Shown here one piece after another: positions 1 through 63,554 of a stretch of 64,000 bases of DNA. The position numbers and the translations under genes were made by a program. The notes beneath the pieces are model-generated. The model made no database searches and was not told the origin of the DNA. It saw only the letters and a program-made list of their open reading frames with translations. How positions within the stretch are numbered: position 1 is the stretch's first letter; every line of letters starts with the position of its first letter. Source of the stretch: Macrostomum lignano (taxonomy: Eukaryota); NCBI GenBank assembly GCA_002269645.1, contig NIVC01000089.1:310001-374000 (forward strand), in the 5' to 3' direction.

Positions 1-1561
1 TGTAGCTGAAACTGCAAAGCTGCAGGAAAGTCCAAATACATGGAGTTCTAATTTAAATGCTAGTTTAATACTGCATGGCTTTGGCTTCAAATGAATTCGA
101 TATTTCTGTGAGTTTAGGTGACTTTATTAGTATTCAATAGGAGTGAGCTGGCGAAGTTTCCTTGGCTGTTTAAAGCACTAAATTTATAAAAGCTGCGTAT
201 GGGCTGAGCCTACCACTCCAGATTCTCTCTATAGAACTCCCTGGCCGGCCGCCTCTTGCAGGACACGCAGGTCGCTAACGAATGCCCAGTTAATGAGCTG
301 TAGAGCAGTCAACTTTCTACTGCTCGACAAAGTTTACAGTAACTCACTCCCTCACTCACTGTGCATCTCAGCCCACTCCAATCTTTTGTGTGTCATTTAG
401 AAATTAAATATAAAAGGACCAATGGCTTGAGTTTGTTTGTGAGTGCACATTGTTGGCAATGGTCAAAACCTGCCAAGAGTTTGGGCAAAAGTTCTTTGTC
501 TTGAGAACACACAATTCCGCATCAACTCGCCCTAGCAGTTATTCTTAGACAGTGATTTGTAAGAAAAACCGCATGTGTAATTTCGGTAATAAATAGGCAT
601 ACAGGTACAGTCTTCTTTCCTGAAAGCAGTTTTTCCAAGGGCGTCATCGAAAGTCCAACCGAGAGAGAAAAATTTATTCAATTCTATGCAAAAATTAAAA
701 ACAGTTTTGTCTTTTCGTACGATTGATTCCAATGCTTGATATGATCTGGGTCATGAAAGCAATCCAAGTTGACTCCAAGTTGGCTGCCTGCTCTGCAGCT
801 TATTAATTGGGCACTCGTTAGCGACCGCGAGCTGCGGAGCTGCGCAGAGGGGGCTGCGGTCGGGCGTGTCCTGCAAGCGGCAGCCGGCCAGGGAGTTCCA
901 TAGAGAGAATCTGGAGTGGATCTCAAGTGAAATTCGCCAGGATCTCATTAAGCACTCGTTAGCTGTCTAACAGTGCATGCCGCCGCAGAAAAAGCTTTTT
1001 CTTCCAAGAGTAATTTGGCTTCCCATTTGTTGGCTAATTCGCCCCCACCTGACAGAGCGTGAATGGTGTCAGTTTTCACGAACCAGATTTCTTCTCTGGT
1101 ACTCCATGCGGTCGGCATTTACGATCGCAAGAAATTGCTGAGCTGGTCTCACGCGCTACCAGCATGTCGCGGATATCCCGCTGGAGGACTCCGCACCGCA
1201 GCGAAACACCCCCCCCCCTCAAAGCAGCGACCCTTCTCATAGCAGCTCCCAGCAAAGCAAATGGCTGTTACAGTGTCTTCACAATGCACCCGAGAGCTTA
1301 GAGAAAACCGAGGTTATTGATCAAGCCAGCTCAGCCCCGTGTTGCTTCGGCATACTCAGCAATATGATTATGCAGTGGTGGCCAGTAGAGTCGCCACCAT
1401 CGATTCAAAGGCGAGCGGCGCCACCCGCCACCCCACGATCTGCGCTCCACCGCAGCAGCAAAGTGAGTTGAATTCCCTCATGATTTGCTTGCAGCTGGCT
1501 CTGGTGGAAACACTGGCGTGAACTGAGCCCTGCAGGGGTAGCTCTCCCTGTCCCTTATGTG

Positions 1562-1568
1562 TATATAA
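1562..1568 (+). promoter_or_regulatory. TATA box of peptide gene copy 1
   Basis: TATATAA 100 nt upstream of the ATG, present at the equivalent position in all three copies. Confidence 0.5.
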
Positions 1569-1661
1569 TTGTTGTTAATATTTGCAACTCGGCAAATTAC
1601 TTTCTGCTCAAGCTATACACCACACTTAGCAAGCCAAAGAAACTCAAACCCAAAAGCAGTC

Positions 1662-1903
1662 ATGCTGAACTACAAGCAAGTGCAAGCCTTTGTGGCCGCG
1701 ATGCTCGTCCTGGCTATGACAGGTAAGAGAGACATCGATCAGTAGTTTATTGAGAATTTGGTAACTCATCGATTTGTCACTCATTATGGACTCTGAAAAC
1801 ATTTGCGTCCTTTTCAGCTGCCGCCATCGAGGTGCCGGCCGACGAAGCCGGAGATGAGGCCGACTACGCTAGGCGCAGATACCGCAGGTGCAGCGTCCTG
1901 TAA
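1662..1903 (+). CDS. Small secreted peptide precursor, copy 1 (2 exons; possible 3rd exon 2023-2032)
   Basis: Exon 1 1662-1722 (MLNYKQVQAFVAAMLVLAMT, donor AG|GTAAGA). 95-nt intron ending TTTTCAG. Exon 2 1818-1903 gives AAAIEVPADEAGDEADYARRRYRRCSVL*. An alternative donor CT|GTAAGC at 1900 joined to the acceptor at 2022 gives ...CSVLEW*. TATATAA at 1562, AATAAA at 2084. Missed by the ORF track because it is spliced. Confidence 0.75.
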
Positions 1904-2498
1904 GCCGGAGGCGCCAATCAGCCCAGCGATGTGCAGGCCAGTGAGGCCCGGCTCACTGACAGCTCTGACAGATCTTAATCGCTGCGGCAAAGCTTATTCT
2001 CGCTTTACTCTCTGGGTTGCAGGGAATGGTGAAGGCGCTGCTTGCTCTGTACATGCGGATTGTGGCTGCTGGCTTGGTGGGGAAATAAACTGAAGAAGCA
2101 GACAATTCAGGCACTCGATGCCTGATTCGGGAGTTCCGCTACCATCTTTTGGCAAATTAGTTTGTTATGGGTTGTCAGTTCTATCCTGATCGAGAGTGCA
2201 AGCAGGAGGTTGAAACTCTCGGTGGCTTCGTCGGAATTCGGTTGCACCAAATAGGGCTCCTTAACGTGAAGGCGACCGAAAAAACACCTGAGTTAAGCAC
2301 GGGTGAGTGGCGAAGAGTTATCTCCAGGTTCTATTTGCGGTCTCCTTGGCAAAGCAGGCCCTGTTGATGTGCAGATCAATGTACCAGGTACAGGGTCGCT
2401 GCTGTCGAGGGGGAAGGGGTTGGTGCGTTCCGGTGCAGAGTTCAAAGTGAGGTGGTTTGTTGCCGGGCGGGTCCGTGGCCGTGGGATATCCGATCCGT

Positions 2499-2738
2499 GA
2501 CATGCTGGTAGCGCGTGAGACCAGCTCAGCAATTTCTTGCAATCGTAAATGCCGACCGCATGGAGTACCAGAGAAGAAATCTGGTTCGTGAAAACTGACA
2601 CCATTCACGCTCTGTCAGGTGGGGGCAAATTAGCCAAATGGGAAGCCAAATTACTCTTGGAAGAAAAAGCTTTTTCTGCGGCGGCATGCACTGTTAGACA
2701 GCTAACGAGTGCTTAATGAGATCCTCGCGAATTTACAT
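2499..2738 (-). repeat. Partial inverted copy of the arm's upstream segment
   Basis: Reverse complement of about 931-1172; contains no peptide exons. Confidence 0.85.
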
Positions 2739-2856
2739 GCATGGCTGAAGCTGAGGCTGAAACCTTTAATTAAATCTGGAACTTCAAAGACTTAAGCATG
2801 GAGTTCTATTTAAAAGCTAATTTAGTACTCCATGGCTTCTGCTTGAAACAGCTCGT

Positions 2857-4570
2857 AAATGTGGATGTTCAATGTGATGTGAATTTTGATAAAAACTTTC
2901 ACTGCACTCGCCAAGCTCGCGGATCATTTCGTACTTGCACCCTCGATCAGGATAGAACTGACAACCCATAACAAACTATTTTGCCAAAAGATGGTAGCGG
3001 AACTCCCGAATCAGGCATCGAGTGCCTGAGTTGTCTGCTTCTTCAGTTTATTTCCCCACCAAGCCAGCAGCCACAATCCACATGTACAGAGCAAGCAGCG
3101 CCTTCACCATTCCCTGCAACCCAGAGAGTAAAGCGAGAATAAGCTTTGCCGCAGCGATTAAGATCTGTCAGAGCTGTCAGTGAGCCGGGCCTCACTGGCC
3201 TGCACATCGCTGGGCTGATTGGCGCCTCCGGCTTACAGGACGCTGCACCTGCGGTATCTGCGCCTAGCGTAGTCGGCCTCATCTCCGGCTTCGTCGGCCG
3301 GCACCTCGATGGCGGCAGCTGAAAAGGACGCAAATGTTTTCAGAGTCCATAATGAGTGACAAATCGATGAGTTACCAAATTCTCACTAAACTACTGATCG
3401 ATGTCTCTCTTACCTGTCATAGCCAGGACGAGCATCGCGGCCACAAAGGCTTGCACTTGCTTGTAGTTCAGCATGACTGCTTTTGGGTTTGAGTTTCTTT
3501 GGCTTGCTAATTGTGGTGTATAGCTTGAGCAGAAAGTAATTTGCCGAGTTGCAAATATTAACAACAATTATATACACATAAGGGACAGGGAGAGCTACCC
3601 CTGCAGGGCTCAGTTCACGCCAGTGTTTCCACCAGAGCCAGCTGCAAGCAAATCATGAGGGAATTCAACTCACTTTGCTGCTGCGGTGGAGCGCAGATCG
3701 TGGGGTGGCGGGTGGCGCCGCTCGCCTTTGAATCGATGGTGGCGACTCTACTGGCCACCACTGCATAATCATATTGCTGAGTATGCCGAAGCAACACGGG
3801 GCTGAGCTGGCTTGATCAATAACCTCGGTTTTCTCTAAGCTCTCGGGTGCATTGTGAAGACACTGCAACAGCCATTTGCTTTGCTGGGAGCTGCTATGAG
3901 AAGGGTCGCTGCTTTGAGGGGGGGTTCACTGCGGTGCGGAGTCGCTCCAGCGGGATATCCGCGACATGCTGGTAGCGCGTGAGACCAGCTCAGCAATTTC
4001 TTGCGATCGTAAATGCCGACCGCATGGAGTACCAGAGAAGAAATCTGGTTCGTGAAAACTGACACCATTCACGCTCTGTCAGGTGGGGGCGAATTAGCCA
4101 ACAAATGGGAAGCCAAATTACTCTTGGAAGAAAAAGCTTTTTCTGCGGCGGCATGCACTGTTAGACAGCTAACGAGTGCTTAATGAGATCCTGGCGAATT
4201 TACATGAATGCTTGCAGCTGAGGCTGAAACTGGAAAGCTGATACTCAAAGATATCAACATGGAGTTCTAATAATGTTCTAGTTTAGTACTCCATGGCTTT
4301 GGCTTGAATCGATTCGATATTTGTGTGAGTGAGTTGAGGGAACTTTATTCCTATTCAATGGGAGCGAATTGGCAAATATTTTTTGCTGGGTAAAGCAAAT
4401 TAAAAACAAACTGCCTGCCACTCCAGATTCTCTCTATGGAACTCCCTGGCCGGCTGCCGCTTGCAGGACACGCCCGACCGCAGCCCCCTCTGCGCAGCTC
4501 CGCAGCTCGCGGTCGCTAACGAGTGCCCAATTAATAAGCTGCAGAGCAGGCAGCCAACTTGGAGTCAACT
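2857..4570 (-). repeat. Segmental duplication arm 2
   Basis: Reverse complement of 13029-14617 plus 4834-4853, and of arm 1. Confidence 0.9.
3233..3474 (-). CDS. Small secreted peptide precursor, copy 2
   Basis: Exon 1 3474-3414, exon 2 3318-3233; coding sequence identical to copy 1. TATA at 3574-3568. The optional exon 3 stop is at 3106-3104. Confidence 0.75.
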
Positions 4571-4833
4571 GAGTGAATGAGTTCATGACTGAGTGAGTGA
4601 TTGAGTTCATTAGTTAGTAAGTGAGCCCATGACTGAGTTTATGAGTGAGTAAGTGAGTTCATGACTGAGTTCAGAGTTCATGAGTTCATGAGTTCATGAG
4701 TAAGTGAGGAGTGAGTGAGTGAGTTTATGAGTGAGTTCATGAGTGAGTTCATGAGTTCATGAGTTCATGAATGAGTGAATGAGTGAGTGAGTAAGTTAAT
4801 TTATGAATGAGTGAGTGAGTGAGTGAGTAAGTG
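4571..4833. repeat. TGAG/TCATGAG low-complexity spacer between arms 2 and 3
   Basis: Degenerate (TGAG)n and GAGTTCAT units. Confidence 0.85.
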
Positions 4834-4853
4834 AGCTGGCCAGGGAGTTCCAT

Positions 4854-5019
4854 TGTAGCATTAATCAGCTACAACCCTTTTGACCATAGACAAATACTCT
4901 ATTTCTCGTTACTGTATCAATCAAATAAAGCCGAGGCTAGTCGAGCCGAGCCGAGAGTTACAACCTTTCTATCTTGCTTCCACATAATAATTCCACTGCG
5001 TTCTAATTCACTCGCTACA
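4854..5019 (+). mobile_element. 5' LTR (166 bp)
   Basis: TGTAGC...CGCTACA with AATAAA at 4924-4929; 2 mismatches against the reconstructed 3' LTR. Confidence 0.95.
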
Positions 5020-5021
5020 AA

Positions 5022-5647
5022 TTAGTATCGCTTTTGACGCTCTAGATAAGACTTTAGACATTCAAAATAAGACTGCATAGGATTGCAAGCAAGGACAGGC
5101 TAGCCACGGCCAGAGCATGCCCAGTCTTGGCTGCAGGGATGGCTTGGCCATAGACTAAAAAATGGAATATCAAAATGAGAATAAGACGCTCAATATGAGA
5201 CCGGGAGTGAACGTAATTTATTTGCTTTTTGGCAGTCACCATACAAACAGCTAAGGAGAAATTAGGCAATAAACAAGAAGCAGAATAGCATATCGAAATG
5301 TTTAGTCCATCACTGAAGTCAGCCTGGCGGACTGCTGCAGGAATCGATGGTGCCATCACAGTGAAATCCAAGGGGTCAGATGCAACCCAAGGGGTGAAGA
5401 AGGAGAGCTGGCTGAGGGTCAGAGGGTTAGAGCGATATCTGAAGGCTTTCACACTCAGTCTCATATTGAGCGTCTTATTCTCATTTTGATATTCCATTTT
5501 TTAGTCTATGGCCAAGCCATCCCTAGCTGCAGCCAAGACTGGGCTTGCTCTGGCCGTGGCTAGCCTGGCCTTGCTTGCGATCCTATGCAGTCTTATTTTG
5601 AATGTCTAAAGTCTTATCTAGAGCGTCAAAAGCGATAGCAGAGCGTG
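5022..5647 (+). promoter_or_regulatory. Primer-binding site (initiator-Met tRNA-like), split by a MITE
   Basis: Excising 5028-5637 gives TAGTAGCAGAGCGTG three bases after the LTR, close to TGGTAGCAGAG, the complement of the 3' end of animal tRNA-iMet. The tRNA assignment is inference. Confidence 0.6.
5028..5635. mobile_element. Non-autonomous foldback element/MITE with TA TSD (Tc1/mariner-like)
   Basis: About 175-bp terminal inverted repeats (TCGCTTTTGACGCTCTAG.../...CTAGAGCGTCAAAAGCGA), flanked by TA at 5026-5027 and 5636-5637; no transposase. Confidence 0.85.
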
Positions 5648-5651
5648 TGGT

Positions 5652-7558
5652 ATGGAGGACACACAGCAGCAGCCGTTAGCGCCCGAAGCTGGAGCCCTGG
5701 CGCAACCAGTACAAGAGGCCTTCGTGCAACGCATCGCTATAAAACCTCCCGCCTTCTACCGGAAGTCGCCCGAGATCTGGTTCCGGCAACTGGAATCGCA
5801 GTTCACTTTAGCTGGAATCACCCACGCTGCGACCAAGCTCCATCATACGTTAGCGGCCCTGCCTGAGGACGTTGCCTGCTCGATCGACCTAGGCACAGAG
5901 GACTACGCCTCGCTTAAAACATCGGTGCTAGAAGCTTTGCGCGCCAACCGACACCAACGAATCGAAGAGGCCCTCGCTGCTGTGGAGCTCGGGGATCGCC
6001 GCCCATCTCAGTTGGTAACCGACATCAAGCGGCGCTTCAGCGAAATAGGTTTACAAGTCGATGACAGCATCATCAAGTCTCGACTCCTAACTGCCCTGCC
6101 CACCCACATCCGTTCGGCCTTGGTCGTCACGAACAGGCGGAGCTGGACGCGTTTGCGAAGATCGCCGACAGCATGCTGGCGGTCGCCGGTTGCACCACCC
6201 CATTCGCCTCTGTAAACCGCGCCGCTGCCACCGGCCAAGAGCACCCGAGGAGCAACGCTGGTCCTTTTCGTAGCAGGAAGCCTGAGGACCCGCGCTCCAA
6301 CCGGAACCCACGCCGACGGCCCAAGATCTGCAACAGTCATCTCTACTACGCCGCCGATGCTCGCACGTGCCGACCATGGTGTGAAGAGTTGATTCGGGAG
6401 GTGATCAGTCTTCCGAAAACTCCCACTTCCAGACACTTAAGCCTGGGAACAAAATCAGTGATCACTTACTGTTGTGGGCTCCTCTTCTTTGTCGCGCGTG
6501 TCTGTAGAGCTCATCTCCGTAGAGCTGTTCCTCCCGGGGTAGTCTTCTTGAAGTCTAGAGTCGGCCGAAGGTGAGAGCGTAACAATTAACTCGACGTCGC
6601 AGTATTTCTTCAAGTGCAGAATTCAATATATTCTCGAGTGCCGAAATCAATGTCAACGATGCGCCCTAGTAACAGAATCAACTTCTATAGCAATACGAGG
6701 TCCTCCAGAAAGGGCGTCTTCTTCTAGAACTAACGGAATCGGAGTCGTGTGCTCCTATCGGTTAATCTAGGATAACCAAAATCAATCAAATCAATAATCC
6801 TCTAAGGGTATCGGAATCGGTCCGCAGATCCTATCCAATCCCTTAGGAAAAGGGAGGCCTCAAACTCAATAGACTCAATAAAATCAACTGAACAGTAACG
6901 GCCGGCAATAACAATCGCTCTCAATAATCAAAATAACGAAGACTTGAACAAAGCTTACCAATTGGTGTTTATTTCTTCCTCAGAGATATAGCCTCTTTGG
7001 AGGCTGCTCCGAGTCTGAGATTTCAGCTCGGATTTTGCGTTTGTATTTATACACAATTTGTCGGCCTTGAGTCGGCCTTGAGCTCAAAACCGGTTTTTTT
7101 GATGAGTTCACGAAAGGAATTTTATTATTTGACAGGTGGGGTTTTTGAATAGAAAGGGGTGAGACTTGGGTTACATTCAGGTTAACATTTACCATATTTG
7201 GAAGTTCTAAAAATAGATGTCGAGAACCGGTTTTTCGAACAATAGCATAGCCACTCGCTGTTTGCGTGATATGACTGGTATTGCTAAAAATAGAGCATGG
7301 CACATAGCTATTTTTAAATTTGCCACTCGCTGTTTGCGTGATATTACTTGTATTACTAAAAATAGAGTATGACACATAGCTATTTTTAAATTTGTATTCA
7401 TAACTTTATATTACTACTTTTAGTAGGCTACTGTGTTTGAAGATCTCTACAGGTGCCAGTGGCCAGGCTCGAAACCGTCGACACTGCTTGTTAGCCGCCA
7501 GCCCACTCCGGCTCAGTCCCGGGTGTCCAGTCCGACACCAAGCCAGGTGTCAAACTAG
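5652..7558 (+). pseudogene. Gypsy gag, interrupted
   Basis: IKPPAFYRKSPEIWFRQLESQF N-terminus. A 1-nt frameshift near 6126 (restoring LVGHEQAELDAFAKIADSML). CHCC knuckle CNSHLYYAADARTCRPWC. Resumes after the 6382-7451 insert as WCQWPGSKP...VSN*. Confidence 0.85.
6382..7451. mobile_element. Solo-LTR-like insertion (1070 bp) in gag
   Basis: Starts TG and ends CA, with imperfect inverted termini (TGAAGAG/CTCTACA) and 4-bp TSD GGTG (6378-6381, 7452-7455). No pol sequence. Internal 78-bp tandem duplication at about 7250-7400. Confidence 0.75.
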
Positions 7559-7566
7559 TTGGTCCC

Positions 7567-10500
7567 ATGCCTCGGCCGAGCCGCGACCCATCAAAGGCCA
7601 CCACACTGCTTCTTCGTTGCCAAGTCCTCCGTACGCCCGTTTCGTTCATCGTTGACACCGGCGCCGAACGGTCGCTTCTTCCTTTGCAGTTTGTTCCTCA
7701 AAATCTACTCGCACCCACCCATGTCAAGCTTTGCGGCGTCGATGGCCGTGAAATCCGAATCTTCGGCCAATGTTGTGTCACACTGGCTATCCCCGGTCTT
7801 CGTAGACCATATCCTGCGACGTTCATTGTTACCAGTACCGCGCCCATCCTCGGTGCAGACTTCTTCCTCAAGTTTGGTCTCCTCATCGACCTGAAGTCAC
7901 GGCGCATTCAAGACCCTGTGACATCTTTGCGTGCGACTCTCTGTTCGTCTAGTGATTCAGTCCCTCAAATCATCGCCACCACGTTGCTTGAGCCCACCAC
8001 ACCGCTTGCTCGGTTCCCTCGAGTTCTGGAAGCTCCGGACTACACCGCAGCACCCGCCACGTCGGTTCGGCATCGTATTGAGACCACCGGCGAGCCCATT
8101 TTTTGTCGACCTCGACCGCTTGCCCCTGCCAAGTTCGCGGTCGCAAAAGCGGAGTTTGACAAGCTCCTGCGCCTTGGCATCGTCCGCCCCTCCGCCAGTC
8201 CATGGGCTTCCCCGCTGCACATGGTGAAGAAAAAGGACGGTTCCTGGAGACCTTGCGGAGACTATCGAGCTTTAAACGCGGCAACCAAGCCAGACCGCTA
8301 CCCTATCCCTAACATCAACCATTTCAATCATCAGCTGCACGGTGCAAAGGTTTTAAGCACCCTTGACCTCGTCAAGGCCTATCACTTCGTTCCGATGGCA
8401 GATGAGGACATCGAGAAGACGGCGATTTGCACCCCGTTCGGCTCGTTCGAATACCTGCGGATGTCTTTTGGTCTCCGGAACGCCGCTAGCACGTTTCAGC
8501 GATATGTCGACTCCGTGTTTCGGGACCTACCATTCGTCACTACCTACATCGACGACATCCTGGTGCACAGCAGGTCTCAGGAAGAGCACCAAGTACACAT
8601 TGAAACAGTTCTGCAACGACTTACCGACAAAGGTTTGGGAGTCAATTCGGACAAGTTTCGGTTCTTCCGCGAGTCTGTGGAGTTTCTCGGCTATCTCGTG
8701 TCTGCGGACGGCATTCGACCCTTGCCCCACCGTGTCGAGGCCTTCCGACAGCTTCCCCTCCTACTGACCACCAGGCCTTGCAGCGCTACCTCGGGATGTT
8801 CGGATTTTACCACTGGTGCATCCCGGACTACGCAAAGATCGTCCTACCATTGCGGCAGCTCGCCTCAACGACATTCGTCTGGACGGAGCACCACGGTCGC
8901 GCTTGGAAAGCGCTTCAGAACAGTCTCGCGGAAGCGGTCACGCTCGCTTTTCCTCATCCCCAGGCCACGTTTACGATCACAACGGACGCCAGCTCGACCG
9001 CCATCGGTGGTGCGCTACATCAAGTGGTGGACGGCCAGTCTTCACCCTTAGCTTTCTACTCGCGGAAACTATCCGACACCGAGACTGCGTACAGCACCTT
9101 CGATCGGGAACTCCTCGGTCAAGGCCTGGAAGAACATGATTCAAGGCCAGCAAACCACTGTGTTCTGCGACCACAAGCCCATCATCGGAGCCTTCGGCAA
9201 CAGAAAGGAGCGTTTTTCGGACCGACAGCAACGCCACCTATCCGTGATCACTGAGTTTGTCAGCGACATCGTTCACATCGCCGATAAGAACAACGTGGTT
9301 GCCGATGCACTATCTCGTCCCAATCTCACCTCCGAGGCGGAGCCACCATCGTCCGTCAGGCTACTAGCTGACATCCCGCCCTCTGTGGATTTGCCGGCTA
9401 TCCCTCGAGCCCAGAAAGACGGTCTACCCGCCAACGATCAACCAGTAGGCCGGTTCAGCAACTTCGAAATCGGGATTAAAGACTACCCATTACGCTGTGA
9501 GACTTCGCAGACTAACCCGCGTCCCGTAGTTCCTGAAGTACTACGACGCGCGGTGTTCAACTCGCTGCATTCGTTTGCACACCCCGGCAGAAAAGCTACG
9601 CAACGGCTCATTAGCTATCGGTTCTTCTGGCCACTAATTGGTTCCGACATTCGCAAGTGGGTAGCCGAGTGCCAACGATGCCAGCAGTGCAAGACTGGAC
9701 GACATGTTCAACGCCCACTGCAGCAGCTGCCTGTGCCATCTCAGAGATTCACTACGGTACACATTGACCTAGTTGGACCGCTACCGCCTCATGTGTCTGA
9801 AGATCCCGGCCCGAAGCCTCGCTACCTACTCACCATGATCGATGCCTACTCACGCTGGTTCGAAGCAGCACTGCTTTCGAACATTGCCGCCACATCAGTC
9901 GCACAAGCCTTCCTGGAAACCTGGATTTCTCGGTTCGGCCCACCTTTGACGCTGATCAGTGACCAGGGATCCCAATTCCGAGCTGAGCTCATGAAGAACT
10001 TGACGGACCTACTCGGCATCCACCACATCCGCACTTCAGCCTATAATCCGAGAGCTAACGGTATCATCGAACGTACACACCGGACGCTAAAGGTCGGTTT
10101 AAAAACGCGCGGCAAGAACTGGCTGCAGCAGCTGCCCGTCGTGCTCCTGGGCATGCGCATTTTCCCAGATGAGTCAGGTGCCTCTCCGTTCTCCATTGTT
10201 ACGGGTGAGCAACCGCTGGTCCCACGGTCGTCACCGACACTTCTGCGCTCAAGGAGCTCTCGACTAGTCTACACTCAACTTTTCTTCCCATACCGGCAGC
10301 CGAGAACGCGAGAGATAGCCGTGCATCTGCCAGCCCCGCTGAGCCCGTGCACACACGTCTGGTTGCGGCTGGACCGTGTGCGACGACCCCTGGAGGCTCC
10401 TTACCAAGGCCCGTACGCGGTGCTGGACAGGCACGACACCACAATGACACTCCAGATCAACAGCAAACCTACCGTAGTGTCAATCGATCGTGTCAAGCCC

Positions 10501-10665
10501 GCCACCCTGCCAACAGCCCATCAAGAGCAGCCGGCAGCTACACCAGACCCGCCAAGCGACGCTCCCGCCGCTAACACAAGGTCGCGCAGCTCAAACCGCG
10601 TGCGATTTAAGAGCGAGACCTCCGTGCAAATCTTCCAGAAGGACAATCCACCTAGCAATATTTGA
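7567..10665 (+). pseudogene. Gypsy pol (protease, RT, RNase H, integrase)
   Basis: IVDTGAERS protease, [18 protein letters not shown] RNase H, HPG...CQRC zinc-binding and D-D-E/GPY integrase motifs. A 1-nt frameshift near 8758 and a ~14-nt deletion near 9118. Pol is in the -1 frame relative to the gag end. Confidence 0.92.
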
Positions 10666-11509
10666 ACCATATTTTAACCGATAGACCTATAGCTTCTGCA
10701 TTGATTGCCTACTCGTTCCCCTGCACTGTTCAAACCAGTTTTTTTGTCTCCAATTATCTACAGCATAGTCATGTACTGTATTTCATCTAGGAGGGGGGAG
10801 TATCTTGTAGCATTAATAAGCTACAACCCTTTTGACCATAGACAAATACTCTATTTCTCGTTACTGTATCAATCAAATACACCATTTTACCCTCGATTTT
10901 GAACAAGGAAAACTTCGAAACTGACAAACTCCTCTTCAATATTGACACTCTATGGTCGGGCACTCAAAATCTAAAATCAATATCGACAGATCAAGCTTCA
11001 ATTTTGACAAACTCTGGTTCAATTTTGACAATGCACGTTTAGTCAACTTCTCCTGGGAGAATTCGGTAACAAAGTAATCCAATGAAAGCCTGAACGGGGC
11101 TGAAGTGAGCTGTGCAAAATCAGCTTATTCTGACTTTGCTTTTTGGATCTACAAGTATTGATAAAATTTATTTTTCTCTATCCTTTACACACACAGACTA
11201 AAATAGCCTGACTGGTTGGGCTGCAAAGTCCGATTCTATTTTGACAGAGTTGCTTCAAAACTGACACTCTATGGTTTGTGTACCCAAAAAGTCCGCTTCA
11301 TTTTTGACAACTCCGAATCAATATCGAACAGTTCACAATCGATTTTGACTAAGATTTCTCTCTTGCGGGGGGGGGGTACTTGCTATTCGGGAGAGGGGGT
11401 ACTGGCTGCATGTATCTACGAGTACATGTATGGGAATCTTTCTAGCCAGGGATGCTTGCTAGAGTCCCTGCTCTCTCAAGGGACTCTAGCAAAAGGCCGG
11501 TCATTTAAC

Positions 11510-11945
11510 ATCCCAAGACAGCAAGCATCCACCCAGATAGCAAGCATCCACCCAGATAGCAAGCATCCACCCAGATAGCAAGCATCCACCCAGATAGCAA
11601 GCATCCACCCAGATAGCAAGCATCCACCCAGATAGCAAGCATCCACCCAGATAGCAAGCATCCCCCAGATAGCAAGCATCCCCCAGATAGCAAGCATCCA
11701 CCCAGATAGCAAGCATCCACCCAGATAGCAAGCATCCACCCAGATAGCAAGCATCCACCCAGATAGAAGCATCCACCCAGATAGCAAGCATCCCCCAGAT
11801 AGAGAGCATCCACCCAGATAGCAAGCATCCACCCAGATAGAAGCATCCACCCAGATAGCAAGCATCCCCCAGATAGCAAGCATATTGCAGATAGCAAGCA
11901 TCATCCAGGTAGCAAACATCCACCCAGATAGCAAGCATACCTGGA
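11510..11945. repeat. 20-bp minisatellite (CAGATAGCAAGCATCCACC[C])
   Basis: About 21 tandem units at the centre of the foldback element. Confidence 0.9.
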
Positions 11946-12149
11946 TAGAAAGATTCCTATACATGTACTCGTAGTACCCCCTCTCCCAAATAGCAAGTAC
12001 CCCCCCCCCTACTCAAGAGAGAAATCTTAGTAAAAATTGTCTAAATCTCTTTCAAAAAATGTCTTAGTCAAAATCGATTGTAAACTGTTCAATATTGATT
12101 CGGAGTTGTCAAAAATGAAGCGGACTTTTTGGGTACACAAACCATAGAG

Positions 12150-12539
12150 CATGGATGAATGAATAGAATGGATTGCTATTCTGGCTCTGGCTATTTTCGT
12201 TTTTGACTCTTTTGCATCCGGTTCCCCCCCGTGCCTTTTCATTGGTTGATGATTGCCATAGACAATTTTCGGCCTTCGCCCCTTTCTTTCGATGCACAAG
12301 CGCTTTCGCTCGTGTTTTGAAATAAAGGGGGAAGACCTACGAGCGCTCGATATTCTCTGCAAGTAACTGACATTCTCATTTCTTTGCGCTTGTGCATCGA
12401 AAGAAAGGGGCGAAGGCCGAAAATTGTCTATGGCAATCATCAACCAATGAAAAGGCACGGGGGGGAACCGGATGCAAAAGAGTCAAAAACGAAAATAGCC
12501 AGAGCCAGAATAGCAATCCATTCTATTCATTCATCCATG
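12150..12539. mobile_element. hAT-type MITE (near-palindromic, 390 bp)
   Basis: CATGGATGAATG...CATTCATCCATG termini, about 155-bp near-perfect arms, 8-bp TSD CCATAGAG (12142-12149, 12540-12547). The hAT assignment rests on TSD length. Confidence 0.85.
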
Positions 12540-13028
12540 CCATAGAGTGTCAGTTTTGAAGCAACTCTGTCAAAATAGAATCGGACTTTGCAGCCCAACC
12601 AGTCAGGCTATTTTAGTCTGTGTGTGTAAAGGATAGAGAAAAATAAATTTTATCAATACTTGTAGATCCAAAAAGCAAAGTCAGAATAAGCTGATTTTGC
12701 ACAGCTCACTTCAGCCCCGTTCAGGCTTTCATTGGATTACTTTGTTACCGAATTCTCCCAGGAGAAGTTGACTAAACGTGCATTGTCAAAATTGAACCAG
12801 AGTTTGTCAAAATTGAAGCTTGATCTGTCGATATTGATTTTAGATTTTGAGTGCCCGACCATAGAGTGTCAATATTGAAGAGGAGTTTGTCAGTTTCGAA
12901 GTTTTCCTTGTTCAAAATCGAGGGTAAAATGGTGTAAAGCCGAGGCTAGTCGAGCCGAGCCGAGAGTTACAACCTTTCTATCTTGCTTCCACATAATGAT
13001 TCCACTGCGTTCTAATTCACTCGCTACA

Positions 13029-14617
13029 CCATAGAGAGAATCTGGAGTGGCAGGCAGTTTGTTTTTAATTTGCTTTACCCAGCAAAAAATATTTGCCAAT
13101 TCGCTCCCATTGAATAGGAATAAAGTTCCCTCAACTCACTCACACAAATATCGAATCGATTCAAGCCAAAGCCATGGAGTACTAAACTAGAACATTATTA
13201 GAACTCCATGTTGATATCTTTGAGTATCAGCTTTCCAGTTTCAGCCTCAGCTGCAAGCATTCATGTAAATTCGCCAGGATCTCATTAAGCACTCGTTAGC
13301 TGTCTAACAGTGCATGCCGCCGCAGAAAAAGCTTTTTCTTCCAAGAGTAATTTGGCTTCCCATTTGTTGGCTAATTCGCCCCCACCTGACAGAGCGTGAA
13401 TGGTGTCAGTTTTCACGAACCAGATTTCTTCTCTGGTACTCCATGCGGTCGGCATTTACGATCGCAAGAAATTGCTGAGCTGGTCTCACGCGCTACCAGC
13501 ATGTCGCGGATATCCCGCTGGAGGACTCCGCACCGCAGCGAAACACCCCCCCCCTCAAAGCAGCGACCCTTCTCATAGCAGCTCCCAGCAAAGCAAATGG
13601 CTGTTACAGTGTCTTCACAATGCACCCGAGAGCTTAGAGAAAACCGAGGTTATTGATCAAGCCAGCTCAGCCCCGTGTTGCTTCGGCATACTCAGCAATA
13701 TGATTATGCAGTGGTGGCCAGTAGAGTCGCCACCATCGATTCAAAGGCGAGCGGCGCCACCCGCCACCCCACGATCTGCGCTCCACCGCAGCAGCAAAGT
13801 GAGTTGAATTCCCTCATGATTTGCTTGCAGCTGGCTCTGGTGGAAACACTGACGTGAACTGAGCCCTGCAGGGGTAGCTCTCCCTGTCCCTTATGTGTAT
13901 ATAATTGTTGTTAATATTTGCAACTCGGCAAATTACTTTCTGCTCAAGCTATACACCACACTTAGCAAGCCAAAGAAACTCAAACCCAAAAGCAGTCATG
14001 CTGAACTACAAGCAAGTGCAAGCCTTTGTGGCCGCGATGCTCGTCCTGGCTATGACAGGTAAGAGAGACATCGATCAGTAGTTTAGTGAGAATTTGGTAA
14101 CTCATCGATTTGTCACTCATTATGGACTCTGAAAACATTTGCGTCCTTTTCAGCTGCCGCCATCGAGGTGCCGGCCGACGAAGCCGGAGATGAGGCCGAC
14201 TACGCTAGGCGCAGATACCGCAGGTGCAGCGTCCTGTAAGCCGGAGGCGCCAATCAGCCCAGCGATGTGCAGGCCAGTGAGGCCCGGCTCACTGACAGCT
14301 CTGACAGATCTTAATCGCTGCGGCAAAGCTTATTCTCGCTTTACTCTCTGGGTTGCAGGGAATGGTGAAGGCGCTGCTTGCTCTGTACATGTGGATTGCG
14401 GCTGCTGGCTTGGTGGGGAAATAAACTGAAGAAGCAGACAATTCATGCACTCGATGCCTGATTCGGGAGTTCTGCTACCATCTTTTTTGGCAAAATACAT
14501 TTGTTATGGGTTGTCAGTTCTATCCTGATCGAGGTGCAAGTACGAAATGATCCGGGAGCTTGGCGAGTGCAGTGAAAGTTTTTATCAAAATTCACATCAC
14601 ATTGAACATCCACATTT
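13029..14617 (+). repeat. Segmental duplication arm 3 (continues 4834-4853 across the Gypsy insertion)
   Basis: Removing 4854-13028 and one CCAT restores GGCCAGGGAGTTCCATAGAGAGAATCTGGAGTGG, as seen intact at about 887-919. Confidence 0.9.
13998..14239 (+). CDS. Small secreted peptide precursor, copy 3
   Basis: Exon 1 13998-14058, exon 2 14154-14239; coding sequence identical to copy 1. TATA at 13898. The optional exon 3 is 14359-14368. Confidence 0.75.
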
Positions 14618-16434
14618 GTGCGTTTCGCACAGGAAAGTTTGACAGAGCCATTGCGCTTACACTGCAGTTTGTCGTGAAATTTTCACTCATGATGGCCGGT
14701 ACACTTTGTTGAGAAAGTCATCATAGCATTTTCGTGCGCGTCCTCAGGGCTTTCTTAATTGAGGTGTCGCTGGCAGCGGGCCAACTGTCGCATCGGCTGT
14801 GCCATGCCTGAGATGCCCTCCGCAGCTGCGGATGCGGAAACAGCCTTAGGGCATCCGGGATGAGCGCTGATACTCGCATTCGCATTTTTAGTGACTAATT
14901 GTGCACTCTGTTGTAACACAACACCTCGGACAGTGTCACAACGTCACTTGTTCATGTATGTTACTCAAGGTGAGCTAGCAGTGGCTCCATCTCCAATAAT
15001 AACCCTTCACTGTTAAATTATCATGACACTATACTAAGAGTATAGTATTATATAGCAGTATATAGCACGAACAAGATAGTTAAAATATCTGAAACCATAC
15101 AATCGAATTAGCTAACAAATATTTAAGTGTTTAGATCGCTAACTACTCATAGTAGTAGGCAGTGGGATTTTGTTCTTTGCGTTTAATATTTCACAGATGA
15201 AATGTTTTGCAACCTGTGGACTTGAAATGTGCAATTCGTTTTAAAAGTTCCTGATACTGACTCTCCAATGGCTGCATATTGCACTGCCTCAACAATCTCA
15301 AGGACAAAAAAATCAAAGATCTCAATACTCCTTTGTGGAAAAATAAACTAGAGAATCAGTTGCTTCAGTCAATTTAACACCTAATTTTGGAGATAGGCTA
15401 CCATTTTAATAACAGCAGACACCAGCAGGGTTTAAGAGTTGAGGGCTCAGTTGCCCAGCTCTTAGCTCTCTCAAAACAAATCTCAGAAGTGCGTTCAATA
15501 CCGGAAGTATGAGTAGTTTCAAATATTTTATTGTTGATTGGTGACGTTGACGGAGCACATTAACAAAGTCACAATTATAACTGTGCCAGTTTTCACAACC
15601 TGCACAAAAATTCGTGTATATAGTTAGTAAACTATTCACTGGTGCACTAGAACAAAATTATTTTGGAAAACTAGCACTTGATAATGAATGCACCGGTATT
15701 TTTTAGCAATAACTAACGGTATGAAGTTTCTCTTTGCCCCATTCAGTTACATTACTCATAAGTCCCTTCTACGACTTACGAGTTGACCAATCTTCTCAAG
15801 CTAGCTGAGGCAATAATTTATGAGTTGCCTTCCCAGGCAAGGCAATATCAAACAAAGCTCTCGGCCATCCCCCGCGCGCTGCCCCGCCATATTAAACGAA
15901 ATGATTATAGTCTAAACACTACCCCTGTCGAGTTTCCGTTGCCAGAGCAGTCCCTGCATGCCACCAATTCAAGAGAGGGAGTTAAGACGGAAACCAAAAT
16001 TCCTGCACGATCGGTTTGCAGCTGGCACTGGTGGAAGCACTGGCGTAAACTAAGCCCAGGAGACCCGCAGCCAGAACTCAGACCAGCAACTCTACCAATG
16101 TCGATCCAGACAACCGTAGGCTGAATACAGTTTTTTTCAGCTTACTCACAAAAGACAGGTTTCGAGCTATACATATACAGTATTGATGAGGACGCAATCT
16201 TTCAATCTTAAAACCGCACATTTAGCTTCGATGCGCTTTTTCCCCTACTGTCAGTAGGCTAGCTTAGGATTGTCTCCCTATTCTCCCATCTAGGCTGAGT
16301 TCTATACTAATTTATGACATTACTTTTAACTATGTTAGACACTCAATGTACTTCCCCTAGGATTCTGATTTTGGGTTTTTTACGCATTTCTGAAGGGCAG
16401 GCGATCCGGGTCTGAGGTGGTTTGACCTCTAACA

Positions 16435-16485
16435 GTCTAGACCACAGATAATAAATAATAAGGTATTAGTATCTGTGGTCTAGAC
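16435..16485. repeat. 16-bp perfect inverted repeat (hairpin)
   Basis: GTCTAGACCACAGATA, a 19-nt AT-rich loop, then TATCTGTGGTCTAGAC. Confidence 0.8.
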
Positions 16486-16812
16486 AGGCGACACTAAGTC
16501 TGGGAGGAATGTTTTTAATCTCATCCTGACCCCCTGATTGGTCACTTTTTCTCTATTTTTAGTGACTTATGGCGGTCTAGCTGTCACTTTTGGCTCCAGC
16601 CTGTCTGGGTCAAAGAGGTCTTCCAGCCTCCTTCCCACTCGCTCTATTACCTTCTCCTTTGATTTATGGGCGTTTTGCAGTCACTTTCGGCGCCAGGCTG
16701 TCTAGACGAGTGACTTTTATTCGATTTTGCTCATGATTTATGACCGCGCCTGTCAACTTCTCTGGGGTCTGAAGGCCACCTGGTGGGGTGGGTTTTGGGG
16801 TCTTGAGCTCAG

Positions 16813-16945
16813 CCAATCAGAGTCGACCTGACCGCCCCCCGGCTCGACCAATCAGAAAATTCGGCGCCTATTTTAACAAAGGCCCTCAGCCAATAGGAAA
16901 ATTCGGCGCTCGTTATAACAAATCGGCCGCATGAAATCTATAAAA
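16813..16945 (+). promoter_or_regulatory. Promoter-like cluster: three CCAAT boxes, GC box, TATA
   Basis: CCAAT at 16813, 16848 and 16890; CCGCCCCC at about 16832; TATAAAA at 16939. No downstream gene identified. Confidence 0.4.
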
Positions 16946-19639
16946 GACGGCATGTTGGCCCGCGCTCGAAAAGGTCCTGGCCCCGTTCCTACTCTCTGGG
17001 ACCTCCCTTCTGTTTGGTCCCTGGCAATCTTGGACTTTTCGGGGCGGAGCTCCCTCCAACGCTCGCCCTTCGGCCGAGGTCACTCGTGATCCCCCTTCCA
17101 CCCGGCCTGCGCCCTAAGATCAGCAACAGCAACCGGCAAGTGAAGAGTAACGGCGGCACACGTCAGTTAGGATCAGCATCAGCATCCCGTCCGAGCGCTT
17201 CGGTCTCTGCGGAATCCTTGGCTACCGGCGGAAGGTCCTCTGATTGGTTGGGTGAGAGACTTTCTTGACCTGCTTAACTGGGTGCGCCCTTTGTCTGACC
17301 CCTTTTTAGGTAGTCCGATAGTATTTGCACTTTTGTTTGCTTGCTTTTGTGTGCCAAACTTGAGGCGGAAGTTACGTTTAATACTAAAAGTAGCCATTTG
17401 CTCTGACTCAATCTAAGGCGTTTAGGATTGCGGATTAAGTAAGAAAGTTAAATCTAGAAGTTGTTGTTAAAGAAGTTAAAGACTTAGTGTTTTCTTTCTT
17501 TTTCGTGGTAACGTGGTAATGAGATAGTACTTTTAGTAGTGTATAAAGGCTCGCCAGCGCAAGAACCCCCTGCAAAAGTCCTCTCTGTCCCTGCATGGCC
17601 AATGCGATCCTAGTCCCAGCAGCGTCCCTTCTATTCGGCTATGACTTCGAGATTTAGACAGCTAAAATACACTAGATGGCAGGTAAGTGCAGTGCCCCTC
17701 TAGTCGGAAGTCCGATTTCGATAGCTCCGGTTTGGTGAGCCGGGGCGCACGGACTGGTGGCAGCGGGTTAGTTAATCCGTGGATTAGCTAATCTCTACCT
17801 TTCAAATTCTCCCTGCTTGTCTCTCGCTGTCTTCTCCTAGCTATAAGACCTTGCTGCTCGCCCACAATCTAGCTACCACGGGGCTGACCATCTGACAGGA
17901 GTGAGAGGCCAGAGCTTTAAGTGATTCATTTCTGAGTTCTGAGGCCCGGAGCCACAGGCTTATGAAGGCCGAACCCATCAGTATATACATCAGTGGCTAA
18001 TGTAAAAATATATTTTTTCTCGACGTTCGCTTTCGATTTTACGCGTATAGTGACATTCGAGTCAATTCTGACAGAGATGCTGTCCTGGAAAATGAAACTA
18101 TAAAAATTTCCGCCAAATCGAAATTATGAGAAACTTTGTGCTTTAAGAACTTGTCAAGACTATAGCTCATTGTTCATATAAGTCTACTGCTAAAGCATGC
18201 ATTGATTTTTTACCTAATTGCGGAGAAAATGGGATGTTGAGGCTGACAGAAACCGGTTTAACAAAACAGAATTTGAGATCATGACGTAGCCCGGGCTGCA
18301 TGAGAATACCTGTGCAAACCCCTGGGCTCTGGCACTGAAAAGTACAGCTGCCAGGCCTCGCCTCTAAACTTTGTCCACCTGTGGATGGTGTGGCAGCTGA
18401 CGTTGCGGCCAAGATGCCATTATCTAGACAGCGAGCCGGGGTTTTTAGAAGGTACACGCCCCCACCAGTCACCTGTGCGGGAGTACACCCGGTTAGGGAT
18501 GTCGATTCCCCGAGGAATTTTCTTATCGGGACCCCGGGGAATTTACTGATTCAAGGTCAGGACTACATGTTCAAGGCGCAAACCGCTCAAGGGTAAAAAG
18601 TCAAAACTTTAAACATTATTTATTTAGAAAGTCTGTATTTGACAACGTGTGGCATCACATCACAAAATCGTGCACGCACCTTTGTTAAAAAGAGTTCAGA
18701 CTCCGGAGGCGGAAAATGCATGCTCAGCACTCAGCAGCTACGCTCATGGAAGGAACCGATAGAATGATAGATCATATTAGTAGGGCATTGTATAACAACT
18801 GGATAGCAACAGCAATCGGCAATAAAAAGTGAGCAATCAGCAAAAAGGTCTGGTACAGCAGATTGGTTTTGTATACGCATACGCATGCATTCGTAAGTAC
18901 ATCATAATACAATACATTACATATAAATCAATATACCGCCCCGCTCCCGGTATCGAGGCATGCAACGCAAGCAAAGGTGAAGCTGAAATTTATATTTGGT
19001 ACGAAATAGTTCTGTTCACAGTGGAAAGACCATGGGGGCTGTATTTCAAATATACACATTTTTCCTTTGTCTGGATCTCCGAAAATATTCAACGAATTGC
19101 CTTGATAATTCAAAGATAATCCAAAATTTTCCGCTCTATTCGATGAAGCAACTTCGAGAATCACGAAAAATCGGCATCGTCGAGATATTCAACGATTTTC
19201 CTCGGGGTGTCTGGTGGCAAAAACCACCAACATTGGAAAAAATTTTCTGCTCACAAAATCTCATCATGAAACCACGTCGGCTCGATAAATTATGCATATC
19301 AGTCGTAGAGGCCTTTGTTCTCAGCATCCCAGACACCCGGGTCCCCTTTCATCTCCGTCTGGAGCATCGGCGGCGACCGTCACGACCTTCAACGAAAGCA
19401 CCCCATCGGCGTCTCAGAGACGGCTGCGTTCCCAAAACTGAAATGGAAGAATCCTCTTCTGCATGCAGCATTCAAACATTAGACATAATCGGTGAATGAA
19501 ATGGACGTCGGCGACCCTCTAGGCTGACCTGTAGACATACAGGCGACCTTCGGGACCTTCAACGGAGTGCCACCACGCGGCCCCGACGAGCTGGCACCCC
19601 CAACATCGTGATTTTTCTTGATTCAAGGCACCAAACCTT

Positions 19640-19860
19640 AAAACAGCTTTGGTCACTTTGCTGTAGTCGCTCTTGCTATTCTCGTCGAGCTCAAGAAAAA
19701 CAGCCAGAGCCTCACCATCCAAAAACGTTGGCAGGTGCAAATGCTTGTCATTTACCCACTTGTTGGCTGCCGCGCACAACTCAAACCGCTGGAGCCACTC
19801 CTTAAAGTTGCCTGAGCTGAACGCCCTAGGAATCGCACGGTGACTGCCGCCCTCTGCCAT
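19640..19860 (-). pseudogene. Truncated retrotransposon gag relic
   Basis: MAEGGSHRAIPRAFSSGNFKEWLQRFELCAAANKW...LPTFLDGEALAVFLELDENSKSDYSKVTKAV matches the F..WL.RFE..A.AN.W...L.G.A gag N-terminal pattern; similarity stops abruptly. Confidence 0.65.
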
Positions 19861-50204: not shown

Positions 50205-51608
50205 GTGTTGGGAGCCTGATTGCAGTGTTGGGAGCTTAATTACAGTGTTGGGAGCCTAATTGCAGTGTTGGGAGCCTAATTACACGGTGTTGGGAGCCTA
50301 ATAACACGGTGTTGGGAGCCTGATTGCACGGTGTTGGGAGCCTAATAACACGGTGTTGGGAGCCTAATAACACGGTGTTGGGAGCCTGATAACACGGTGT
50401 TGGGAGCCTGATAACACGGTGTTGGGAGCCTGATAACACGGTGTTGGGAGCCTAATAACACGGTGTTGGGAGCCTGATAACACGGTGTTGGGAGCCTAAT
50501 AACACGGTGTTGGGAGCCTGATAACACGGTGTTGGGAGCCTGATTGCACGGTGTTGGGAGCCTAATAACACGGTGTTGGGAGCCTAATAACACGGTGTTG
50601 GGAGCCTGATTGCACGGTGTTGGGAGCCTAATAACACGGTGTTGGGAGCCTGATTGCACGGTGTTGGGAGCCTGATAACACGGTGTTGGGAGCCTAATAA
50701 CACGGTGTTGGGAGCCTAATTGCAGTGTTGGGAGCCTAATTACACGGTGTTGGGAGCCTAATAACACGGTGTTGGGAGCCTGATTGCACGGTGTTGGGAG
50801 CCTAATAACACGGTGTTGGGAGCCTAATAACACGGTGTTGGGAGCCTGATAACACGGTGTTGGGAGCCTGATAACACGGTGTTGGGAGCCTGATAACACG
50901 GTGTTGGGAGCCTGATAACACGGTGTTGGGAGCCTGATAACACGGTGTTGGGAGCCTAATAACACGGTGTTGGGAGCCTGATAACACGGTGTTGGGAGCC
51001 TGATTGCACGGTGTTGGGAGCCTAATAACACGGTGTTGGGAGCCTAATAACACGGTGTTGGGAGCCTGATTGCACGGTGTTGGGAGCCTAATAACACGGT
51101 GTTGGGAGCCTGATTGCACGGTGTTGGGAGCCTGATAACACGGTGTTGGGAGCCTAATAACACGGTGTTGGGAGCCTAATAACACGGTGTTGGGAGCCTA
51201 ATAACACGGTGTTGGGAGCCTGATTGCACGGTGTTGGGAGCCTAATAACACGGTGTTGGGAGCCTGATTGCACGGTGTTGGGAGCCTAATAACACGGTGT
51301 TGGGAGCCTGATTGCACGGTGTTGGGAGCCTAATGACGGTGTTGGGAGCCTAATTGCAGTGTTGGGAGCCTAATAACACGGTGTTGGGAGCCTAATAACA
51401 CGGTGTTGGGAGCCTAATAACACGGTGTTGGGAGCCAGATTGCACGGTGTTGGGAGCCAGATTGCACGGTGTTGGGAGCCAGATTGCACGGTGTTGGGAG
51501 CCAGATTGCACGGTGTTGGGAGCCAGATTGCACGGTGTTGGGAGCCAGATTGCACGGTGTTGGGAGCCAGATTGCACGGTGTTGGGAGCCAGATTGCACG
51601 GTGTTGGG
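50205..51608. repeat. 22-bp minisatellite
   Basis: CACGGTGTTGGGAGCC followed by TAATAA, TGATAA, TGATTG or AGATTG. Confidence 0.97.
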
Positions 51609-52947: not shown

Positions 52948-53514
52948 TTGAACTTTTTAATCGAAATTCAAACCCGGACGAGACCGAGCTTGGAGTTCTC
53001 AGAGGATGAAGAAATCAAATATATTTATTATTTTATTTCTCGTGAAGCTACTGGAAGTTTCCCTGTACTTGGATTGCTTCAAGATAGCGGAAACGCTCTC
53101 TCTCCTAGCCGGCTCACGCAGTGGCTGTCAGCGACTTTGCCCGCGACTGTTTTCGCTCTGCTGCCACCACCCGTGAGAGCCTATGGCTGCCAGGCCGGCG
53201 CAGCGGGGGGCAGAGAGGGAATTAAAGTTGAAACTGTCGTCCCGTCCCACCGGCGGGTTCGGGCGCCCCTCCTCTCCTCCCCTCACCCACCCGTCATGCA
53301 GTTCGTGGAGCCGGAGGACTTTATCCAGCCGGAGTCTCCCCGAGACGCCAAATAAGTTTTCTATGAGCGCCACTCTCGGTCTGGGTTTGCCTGTTGGAGC
53401 TGCGTCACTTTTTCAACTGTTACTAATATGGATCCAGGCATGGGGCCCGCTGTGAAATACTCGTAATAACTTTCCTGCTGTAGTTTCATAATCTTGCTCA
53501 ACTCTGCTTTTTCC

Positions 53515-53630: not shown

Positions 53631-53649
53631 ATTCGGTACCAGGGGCTTT

Positions 53650-63517: not shown

Positions 63518-63554
<37 letters not shown>

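Follow-up and report, generated by a model that had tools for sequence, protein, structure and literature searches.

A putative secreted-peptide micro-gene in a palindromic cluster of Macrostomum lignano

Does a 48-codon reading frame that occurs three times in a repeat-rich stretch of a flatworm genome belong to a real gene, and if so, what might its product do? The stretch is a 64-kb window of the Macrostomum lignano genome assembly (coordinates are those of the window, whose position 1 is position 310001 of contig NIVC01000089.1, unless another contig is named), and the frame lies in a two-exon unit of cluster Mlig001779. Positions 1-23999 of the window match NIVC01000089.1 of assembly GCA_002269645.1 at 100% identity. 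We consider it probable that this unit is a genuine, transcribed, lineage-restricted micro-gene for a small, taxon-specific secreted effector peptide. The case for a gene comes from its structure, its transcription-derived annotation, the architecture of its copies, its coding-like composition and its orphan status, each of which is presented below together with the competing explanations.

Gene structure, transcript models and coding composition

The 61-nt first coding exon has exactly three matches in the window, with no mismatches and a chance expectation of 0: 1662-1722 on the + strand (copy A), 3474-3414 on the - strand (copy B) and 13998-14058 on the + strand (copy C). Direct reading places a TATATAA box at 1562-1568 (+) in copy A, 3574-3568 (-) in copy B and 13898-13904 (+) in copy C; this box is invariant in an alignment of seven copies and sits 34 nt 5' of the start of the GenBank model g10 (13932, equivalent to 1596 in copy A). 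With the 5' end taken from g10, the transcription unit of copy A would run from 1596 to 2110 (+). It comprises a 5' untranslated region (UTR) at 1596-1661, a coding sequence (CDS) read directly and by translation from the ATG at 1662 through 1662-1722 (61 nt) and 1818-1903 to a TAA at 1901-1903, a 95-nt phase-1 intron at 1723-1817 (GTAAGA...TTTTCAG), and an AATAAA signal at 2084-2089 within the 3' UTR. Copies B and C have exactly the CDS of A, and their positions follow from A by plain offsets with no indels: the unit of copy B spans 3026-3540 on the - strand (CDS 3474-3414 and 3318-3233, TATA box 3574-3568, AATAAA 3052-3047) and that of copy C spans 13932-14446 on the + strand (CDS 13998-14058 and 14154-14239, TATA box 13898-13904, AATAAA 14420-14425). 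All three translate into the same 48-residue product, MLNYKQVQAFVAAMLVLAMTAAAIEVPADEAGDEADYARRRYRRCSVL. The best explanation is that every copy is driven by a TATA promoter of its own and that removal of the 95-nt phase-1 intron leaves a transcript of about 420 nt, in which the first AUG opens the 48-codon open reading frame (ORF). An initial annotation made from the DNA alone had described three copies with a TATA box, a signal-peptide exon, a phase-1 intron, a second exon and identical coding sequence, and every one of its coordinates holds.

That annotation also called the gene unannotated, which is not the case, as GenBank already carries RNA-seq-derived models of it under BOX15_Mlig001779 "hypothetical protein": g10 and g12 in the window, and g2, g4 and g7 on two other contigs. 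The gene is therefore not new to databases and is uncharacterised there. RNA-seq (StringTie/TACO) was combined with a de novo transcriptome and TransDecoder to build these models, and any transcript that overlapped repeats was dropped ahead of submission (PMC5730564). Six GenBank proteins (PAA91356/7, PAA87287/8/9 and PAA47528) contain ...LAMTAAAIEV..., that is, they span the 1722/1818 junction, and because every product reads this way the junction has transcript-derived support. Copy C is represented by g10 (PAA91356.1; CDS 13932-14239, +, 5'-partial), the one clean model, which has the same two-exon structure as the one read from the DNA, so that the structure first proposed is borne out by a public model. 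The coding part of g12 (PAA91357.1; CDS range 3233-13999, -) comes from copy B, to which an antisense piece of the copy C 5' UTR (MTAFGFEFLWLA) is joined across 10 kb; its product has Q in place of H in the translated 5' UTR, in agreement with a base at alignment column 126 that is specific to copy B. For copy A, the GenBank record lists no gene.

Four of the six models are chimeric, through antisense first exons or copy-to-copy joins. They are g12, g2, g4 and g7, at window positions 3233-13999 (-), at 9761-26313 and 10001-24741 of L001 (a piece of contig NIVC01000237.1), and at 8382-12174 of L003. The chimeras either have a first exon antisense to the 5' UTR of one copy (MTAFGFEFLWLA) or combine exons 1 and 2 with the 5' UTR of another copy 10-16 kb away, and the joins use AG acceptors within the 5' UTR, after 1612 and 1629 in copy A coordinates. 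They could reflect genuine antisense or read-through transcription, or a multi-mapping artefact. With two thirds of its public models being between-copy chimeras, the GenBank annotation of this gene is poor, and a practical outcome of the analysis is that these four can be replaced by the simple two-exon model.

A second, optional intron at 1900-2022 of copy A (+; GTAAGC...GGGTTGCAG, ending in TTGCAG, 123 nt) overlaps the stop codon, and its use would yield 50 residues ending in ...CSVLEW. The splice signals of this intron are present and good. The 50-residue isoform proposed from them finds no counterpart in public models, none of which uses exon 3: the GenBank products all end in ...RRRYRRCSVL, and in a search with the 50-residue query no public product had an EW ending, both matches covering 48 of the 50 residues. 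The 48-residue form is thus the supported one. The 3' UTR, or putative exon 3, also contains a 20-codon hydrophobic ORF (MVKALLALYMRIVAAGLVGK, 2026-2088, +) with equivalents in copies B and C. Two sites within it vary between copies and both are amino-acid replacements, so this ORF is probably meaningless; no further ORF in the unit, this one included, is credible as a gene.

Composition argues that the 48-codon frame is coding. The two coding exons have GC contents of 0.54 and 0.66, versus 0.37 in intron 1, and GC at third codon positions is 0.77 in the ORF versus 0.76 for seven ORFs nearby. With these seven ORFs as the training set, the codon-usage log-likelihood was +13.3 bits for frame 0, compared to -15.9 and -10.2 bits for the other two frames and -5 to -26 bits for the antisense frames, and the frame 0 score was reached by none of 2000 shuffles. 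The ORF also begins at the first AUG of the inferred transcript, with no ATG in the 5' UTR at 1596-1661. Codon usage supports the reading frame. Across eight copies (including those on other contigs, described below), 2 of 147 CDS columns, 2 of 214 intron columns and 7 of 154 UTR columns vary, with 0-4 differences between copies per 515 nt, and the two CDS changes belong to a single TAC>TGG (Tyr>Trp) carried by one of the copies of the sister contig NIVC01000237.1.

The predicted peptide and competing explanations for it

We found no relative outside M. lignano, either when 5.8 billion proteins were searched through a word index (E up to 10) or in a full HMMER scan of 1.84 billion representatives, in agreement with the initial annotation, which had recognised no family. 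Pfam has no match for the product and Rfam none anywhere in the window, and the protein occurs on only three contigs in a 15-billion-protein collection. In the collections searched, then, the gene is an orphan restricted to M. lignano. Orphan, clustered genes for small secreted peptides are common in invertebrate genomes, and a gene of this kind is unsurprising. One diverged relative lies at another locus of the same species: UniProt A0A1I8FGA5 (263 aa, named "Secreted protein", from an older assembly) keeps the predicted signal peptide intact, with 96% identity over residues 1-26, has PKAV-MLNYKQVQAFVAAMLVLAMTAAAIE and then continues in shifted frames, with unrelated flanks. Its exon 2 was reconstructed indirectly from the frame-shifted translation (the DNA is not on record) and, once re-framed, appears to read ...DEAGDEADYARHRYR..., with four changes at third-codon positions and one replacement. 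This substitution pattern is suggestive but falls short of significance (about p=0.19) and is open to both ascertainment bias and assembly error. A0A1I8FGA5 would be either a diverged paralogue or a pseudogene.

Secretion, cleavage sites and a biological role are what we infer from the product itself. By manual evaluation, its N-terminus has the features of a signal peptide, with an n-region MLNYK bearing K5, a core AFVAAMLVLAM, a c-region TAAA, a 9-residue hydropathy peak of 2.9 at residues 9-18, Ala at -1 and -3, a cleavage point between AAA and I, and acidic residues thereafter; the phase-1 intron sits just ahead of the cleavage region. They are what one expects of a cleavable signal peptide, not of a transmembrane anchor. 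The 25-mer predicted to remain after cleavage, IEVPADEAGDEADYARRRYRRCSVL (2.9 kDa, pI 5.0), is divided into an acidic 15-mer (charge -6.2) and an Arg-rich decamer, RRRYRRCSVL (+4.7), with the segment IEVPADEAGDEADYA directly preceding RRRY. The layout of signal peptide, acidic part and basic part, as first described, therefore appears to be present. The decamer holds candidate convertase motifs, RRR at 39-41 and a furin-type R-Y-R-R at 41-44, and the only Cys of the product (C45).

We propose that the N-terminal 23 residues would act as a cleavable signal peptide for the endoplasmic reticulum (ER), with import of the precursor probably post-translational because it is very short, and that cleavage after Ala23 (AAA) would free IEVPADEAGDEADYARRRYRRCSVL into the secretory pathway. 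This 25-mer might be dimerised through a disulfide or trimmed at its basic sites, and its acidic half may neutralise the Arg-rich half until release or processing. The source would be a differentiated secretory or epithelial cell, and the design resembles that of host-defence peptides; a gland or seminal-fluid product and a host-defence-like effector are about equally possible, and a classical neuropeptide is less likely. Selection on dosage and an antimicrobial, toxin, seminal-fluid or signalling role, all raised in the initial annotation, are pure conjecture. Should they be secreted and active, the peptides would form one of the earliest families of taxon-restricted secreted effectors to be described from a macrostomid flatworm. 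M. lignano is free-living and has both transgenesis and RNA interference, and because the promoter is compact (~0.9 kb) and the copies are near-identical, one double-stranded RNA or one reporter would address the whole family.

Several observations weigh against a functional secreted peptide. Neither homology search returned a relative from another species, and A0A1I8FGA5 is frameshifted in its error-prone source assembly. The transcript evidence at this repeated locus is noisy because of the chimeric models, and purifying selection is not demonstrable from the copies because they are too alike. If convertases cut at the basic residues, the cationic segment would be lost and only YRRCSVL or CSVL would remain, so an antimicrobial peptide released from its propiece fits poorly. 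Neither Mlig001779 nor the peptide strings are mentioned, and no expression pattern is given, in the literature searched or in the M. lignano supplements, of which two of the largest tables were covered in part. Nor is Mlig001779 in the compiled list of M. lignano transcripts tested in situ (PMC7336406 file 16).

These data leave some room for an explanation that we consider unlikely, in which the transcript is real and its ORF functionless, a young and possibly de novo product of a duplicated, transposon-rich segment whose resemblance to a signal peptide is fortuitous. Orphan status and the lack of measurable coding constraint among the copies would both fit such an ORF, the locus may be transcribed promiscuously, to judge from the chimeric and antisense models, and chance readily gives short ORFs hydrophobic N-termini. 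A functionless ORF sits poorly with the start at the first AUG and the strongly frame-specific codon usage, however, and the exon/intron contrast in GC and the phase-1 intron at the boundary of the predicted signal peptide fit a coding gene. The relative A0A1I8FGA5 also retains the signal peptide, and four of its five visible exon 2 changes fall on synonymous positions.

Still less probable, in our estimation, is a neuropeptide or hormone precursor that convertases would cut at RRR and RR. A signal peptide, an acidic spacer and basic sites do form a generic prohormone layout, and R-Y-R-R is a furin/prohormone convertase consensus, but the product has no Gly-dibasic amidation site (G-[KR][KR]), and the products expected of such cuts (Y, CSVL and YRRCSVL) are atypical or too short. 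Other flatworms yielded no relative among the 5.8 and 1.84 billion proteins searched, whereas such families are usually conserved, and a multi-copy palindromic cluster is atypical for genes of this type. The neuropeptide-like comparison made initially thus falls on both amidation and conservation.

We are very doubtful of a membrane-bound or lipidated micro-protein, which would arise either from an uncleaved signal anchor or from a peptide too short for co-translational targeting and therefore completed in the cytosol, with RRRYRR-CSVL acting as a polybasic, geranylgeranyl-type CaaX box. The C-terminal CSVL of the 48-residue form may be read as CaaX, a motif that the hypothetical EW isoform would lose, and RRRYRR-CSVL fits the polybasic CaaX pattern, with five Arg in six residues directly before C-S-V-L. 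S is tolerated at the a1 position of CaaX, and L at X specifies geranylgeranyltransferase I. It speaks for a lipidated form that it is the model-supported 48-residue product that ends in this way, that the tails of K-Ras4B, Rac1 and Rap1 share the pattern, that a 48-residue chain is complete before its signal sequence has fully exited the ribosome, and that the alternative EW splice would mask the motif. On the other side, the short 11-residue core, TAAA, and the K before and acidic residues after the core predict a cleaved signal and a lumenal C-terminus, away from cytosolic prenyltransferases; CxxL has a non-negligible chance frequency at C-termini, and there is no experimental hint of lipidation. 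As the C-terminus is predicted to be lumenal, the CaaX resemblance is probably coincidental. We give very little credence to the specific proposal that the tail would be geranylgeranylated, with the EW splice as an off-switch, making the product an animal counterpart of the fungal prenylated pheromones or a doubly anchored micro-protein.

A defensin-like or otherwise cysteine-stabilised peptide, to which the product had also been compared, is rejected on its one Cys, versus an even set of at least 4-6, and on the lack of a Pfam match.

The palindromic locus and its sister contigs

The borders of the repeated units come from self-BLAST and a repeat search of the window. Unit A (750-2202, +) has the micro-gene between ~850 nt of upstream sequence and a short 3' flank; unit B (2857-4589, -) lies tail-to-tail with A over a spacer at 2208-2928; and unit C (13029-14617, +) has a far-upstream remnant at 4836-4853, beyond a retrotransposon. 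The segment 923-2202 is 98.7% identical to 4207-2934 and 98.8% identical to 13261-14540, and 750-919 matches 4589-4418. Overall, the units are 98.7-99% identical, in line with the recent amplification first proposed. The 721-nt A/B spacer holds a gene-less partial copy of the upstream segment at 2493-2847, which matches 3957-4308 and 13511-13160 at 90% and of which 2493-2734 matches 1174-930 at 97%. Units B and C at first faced each other head-to-head, with a (TGAG)n-type microsatellite at about 4590-4835 between them. A segment of ~210 bp 5' of B (4208-4417) and C (13029-13260) is absent from A and has a 77%-identical copy at 38-268; this segment may be a small mobile element of the non-autonomous kind.

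The B/C palindrome was split by the insertion of an 8.2-kb long terminal repeat (LTR) retrotransposon (4854-13028, +), which ends 903 nt upstream of the copy C transcript start. Its 167-bp LTRs (4854-5019, and 10806-10879 plus 12935-13028) are 98-99% identical, the 4-bp target duplication CCAT is found at 4850-4853 and 13029-13032, and the overlapping ORFs at 5652-10665 have Pfam matches to DUF7041 (gag-like), RVP, RVT_1, RNase H and integrase. The string ggccagggagttCCATagagagaatctgg is unbroken in copy A (about 891-919) and interrupted by the insertion in C. The retrotransposon is young, and its 3' LTR in turn contains a nested fold-back-like element of 2.06 kb (10880-12934) with perfect 397-nt terminal inverted repeats (TIRs), a TA target duplication, further internal inverted repeats and a 19-bp minisatellite of about 23 copies at 11516-11938.

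The copy count of three given in the initial annotation is correct for the window, and the family beyond it is larger: at least four copies lie on NIVC01000237.1 and one on NIVC01004420.1, in addition to the diverged paralogue elsewhere. NIVC01000237.1 is a sister contig with 99.8% identity over 11 kb, retrotransposon included, and carries the same A/B/C set together with a fourth copy ~14 kb further out (L001 9544-10105, about 28.4-29.0 kb). The only coding difference seen is in this fourth copy, where the adjacent double substitution TAC>TGG changes RRRYRR to RRRWRR and keeps an aromatic residue; on the window's own contig, the equivalent position of this copy would be ~13 kb before the window start. 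Because the arrangement is the same on the sister contig, the duplications and the retrotransposon insertion predate the divergence of the two contigs, and local inverted duplication prior to that divergence would have produced the copies, A/B tail-to-tail and B/C head-to-head.

The "orthologous" A copies of the two contigs (window 923-2202 versus L001 23766-25040) differ by 1.1%, compared to ~0.1% over the surrounding 9 kb. The A-type copy on the sister contig is a mosaic, B-like in its upstream part (2 versus 11 differences) and A-like in its transcribed part (1 difference). This mosaic probably indicates gene conversion between the palindrome arms, which would keep the copies alike. The locus thus offers a small, datable example, from a neopolyploid genome, of how a palindrome formed, took up a retrotransposon and probably underwent gene conversion.

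A locus full of repeats and insertions, and the ability of sequencing to create palindromes, might suggest that the unit belongs to a mobile element or is an assembly artefact (a PacBio fold-back palindrome) and the gene family spurious, a notion we regard as highly improbable and reject, since the arms differ by ~1.3% with indels and flank a unique 721-nt spacer, the same A/B/C arrangement recurs with copy-specific variants on an independent contig, and transposon features are absent from the unit. It is the presence of that set with its own variants on NIVC01000237.1 that rules out a fold-back artefact. The unit lacks a transposon domain as well as a bounding TIR, LTR or target duplication; it has no other substantial ORF, and its ends are ragged and differ between copies, unlike the clear termini of the neighbouring LTR and TIR elements. 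The unit is also unlikely to be a genome-wide high-copy transposon, a prospect raised in the initial annotation: repeat-overlapping transcripts are excluded from the GenBank gene set, in which it is nonetheless found, and the protein occurs on only three contigs in the 15-billion-protein collection.

Elsewhere in the window, two conserved, GC-rich (0.63) host genes lie on the + strand, one at 40330-43437 for an Sfi1-like repeat protein (Pfam Sfi1, E=3e-8 on 41282-42001) and one at 45170-46174 for the mitochondrial ribosomal protein MRP-S35 (E=1e-37). Minisatellite or microsatellite arrays occupy 24839-26134, 34997-36856, 38662-40158, 43497-44459, 50342-51031, 53413-54221, 54677-55303, 58215-59669 and 63240-63888; they contain long spurious ORFs in several frames and show strong local GC and AT skews (for example, at 56-60 kb).

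Likeness to known systems

The antimicrobial peptide families of Hydra combine signal-peptide cleavage, a bipartite charge, clustered paralogues and restriction to a genus (PMC10945409). Theirs is the nearest design so far described: the M. lignano gene resembles the Hydra arminins and periculins in its predicted signal peptide, its anionic and cationic parts, its clustered paralogues and its orphan status, a likeness of layout only. It differs from them in having no sequence similarity, a shorter product (25 residues after the signal) and a single Cys. The cationic part of arminin 1a is reportedly about 31 residues long, compared to 10 in the M. lignano peptide.

Amphibian temporin and dermaseptin prepropeptides consist of a signal peptide, an acidic spacer, a basic processing site and a very short C-terminal peptide, and the M. 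lignano precursor appears to have its parts in the same order. There is no homology between them, however, and in M. lignano the basic residues form most of the C-terminal piece, rather than a single KR before it, and no amidation Gly is present. The short-form Bomanins of Drosophila and apamin of the honeybee illustrate that a precursor with a signal peptide, no more than 50 residues and a tiny mature peptide is a viable secretory product and that such genes often occur in multi-gene clusters. The M. lignano product has no sequence relationship to them, and the Bomanins carry a CXXC motif and are immune-induced. Fungal a-factor-type precursors, of 30-50 residues, are multi-copy and prenylated, and RRRYRR-CSVL is like their tails and those of small GTPases in joining a polybasic stretch to C-a-a-L; both kinds of protein are modified in the cytosol and carry no signal peptide at the N-terminus, whereas one is predicted here.

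For the locus as a whole, the nearest likeness in our comparison is to ampliconic palindromes, such as those on sex chromosomes, which are homogenised by arm-to-arm gene conversion. The arms in M. lignano measure 1.5 kb, versus tens to hundreds of kb in ampliconic palindromes, and conversion here is read from a few sites only. The resemblance lies in the inverted copies, arms at least 98.7% identical, short spacers and mosaic sharing of variants.

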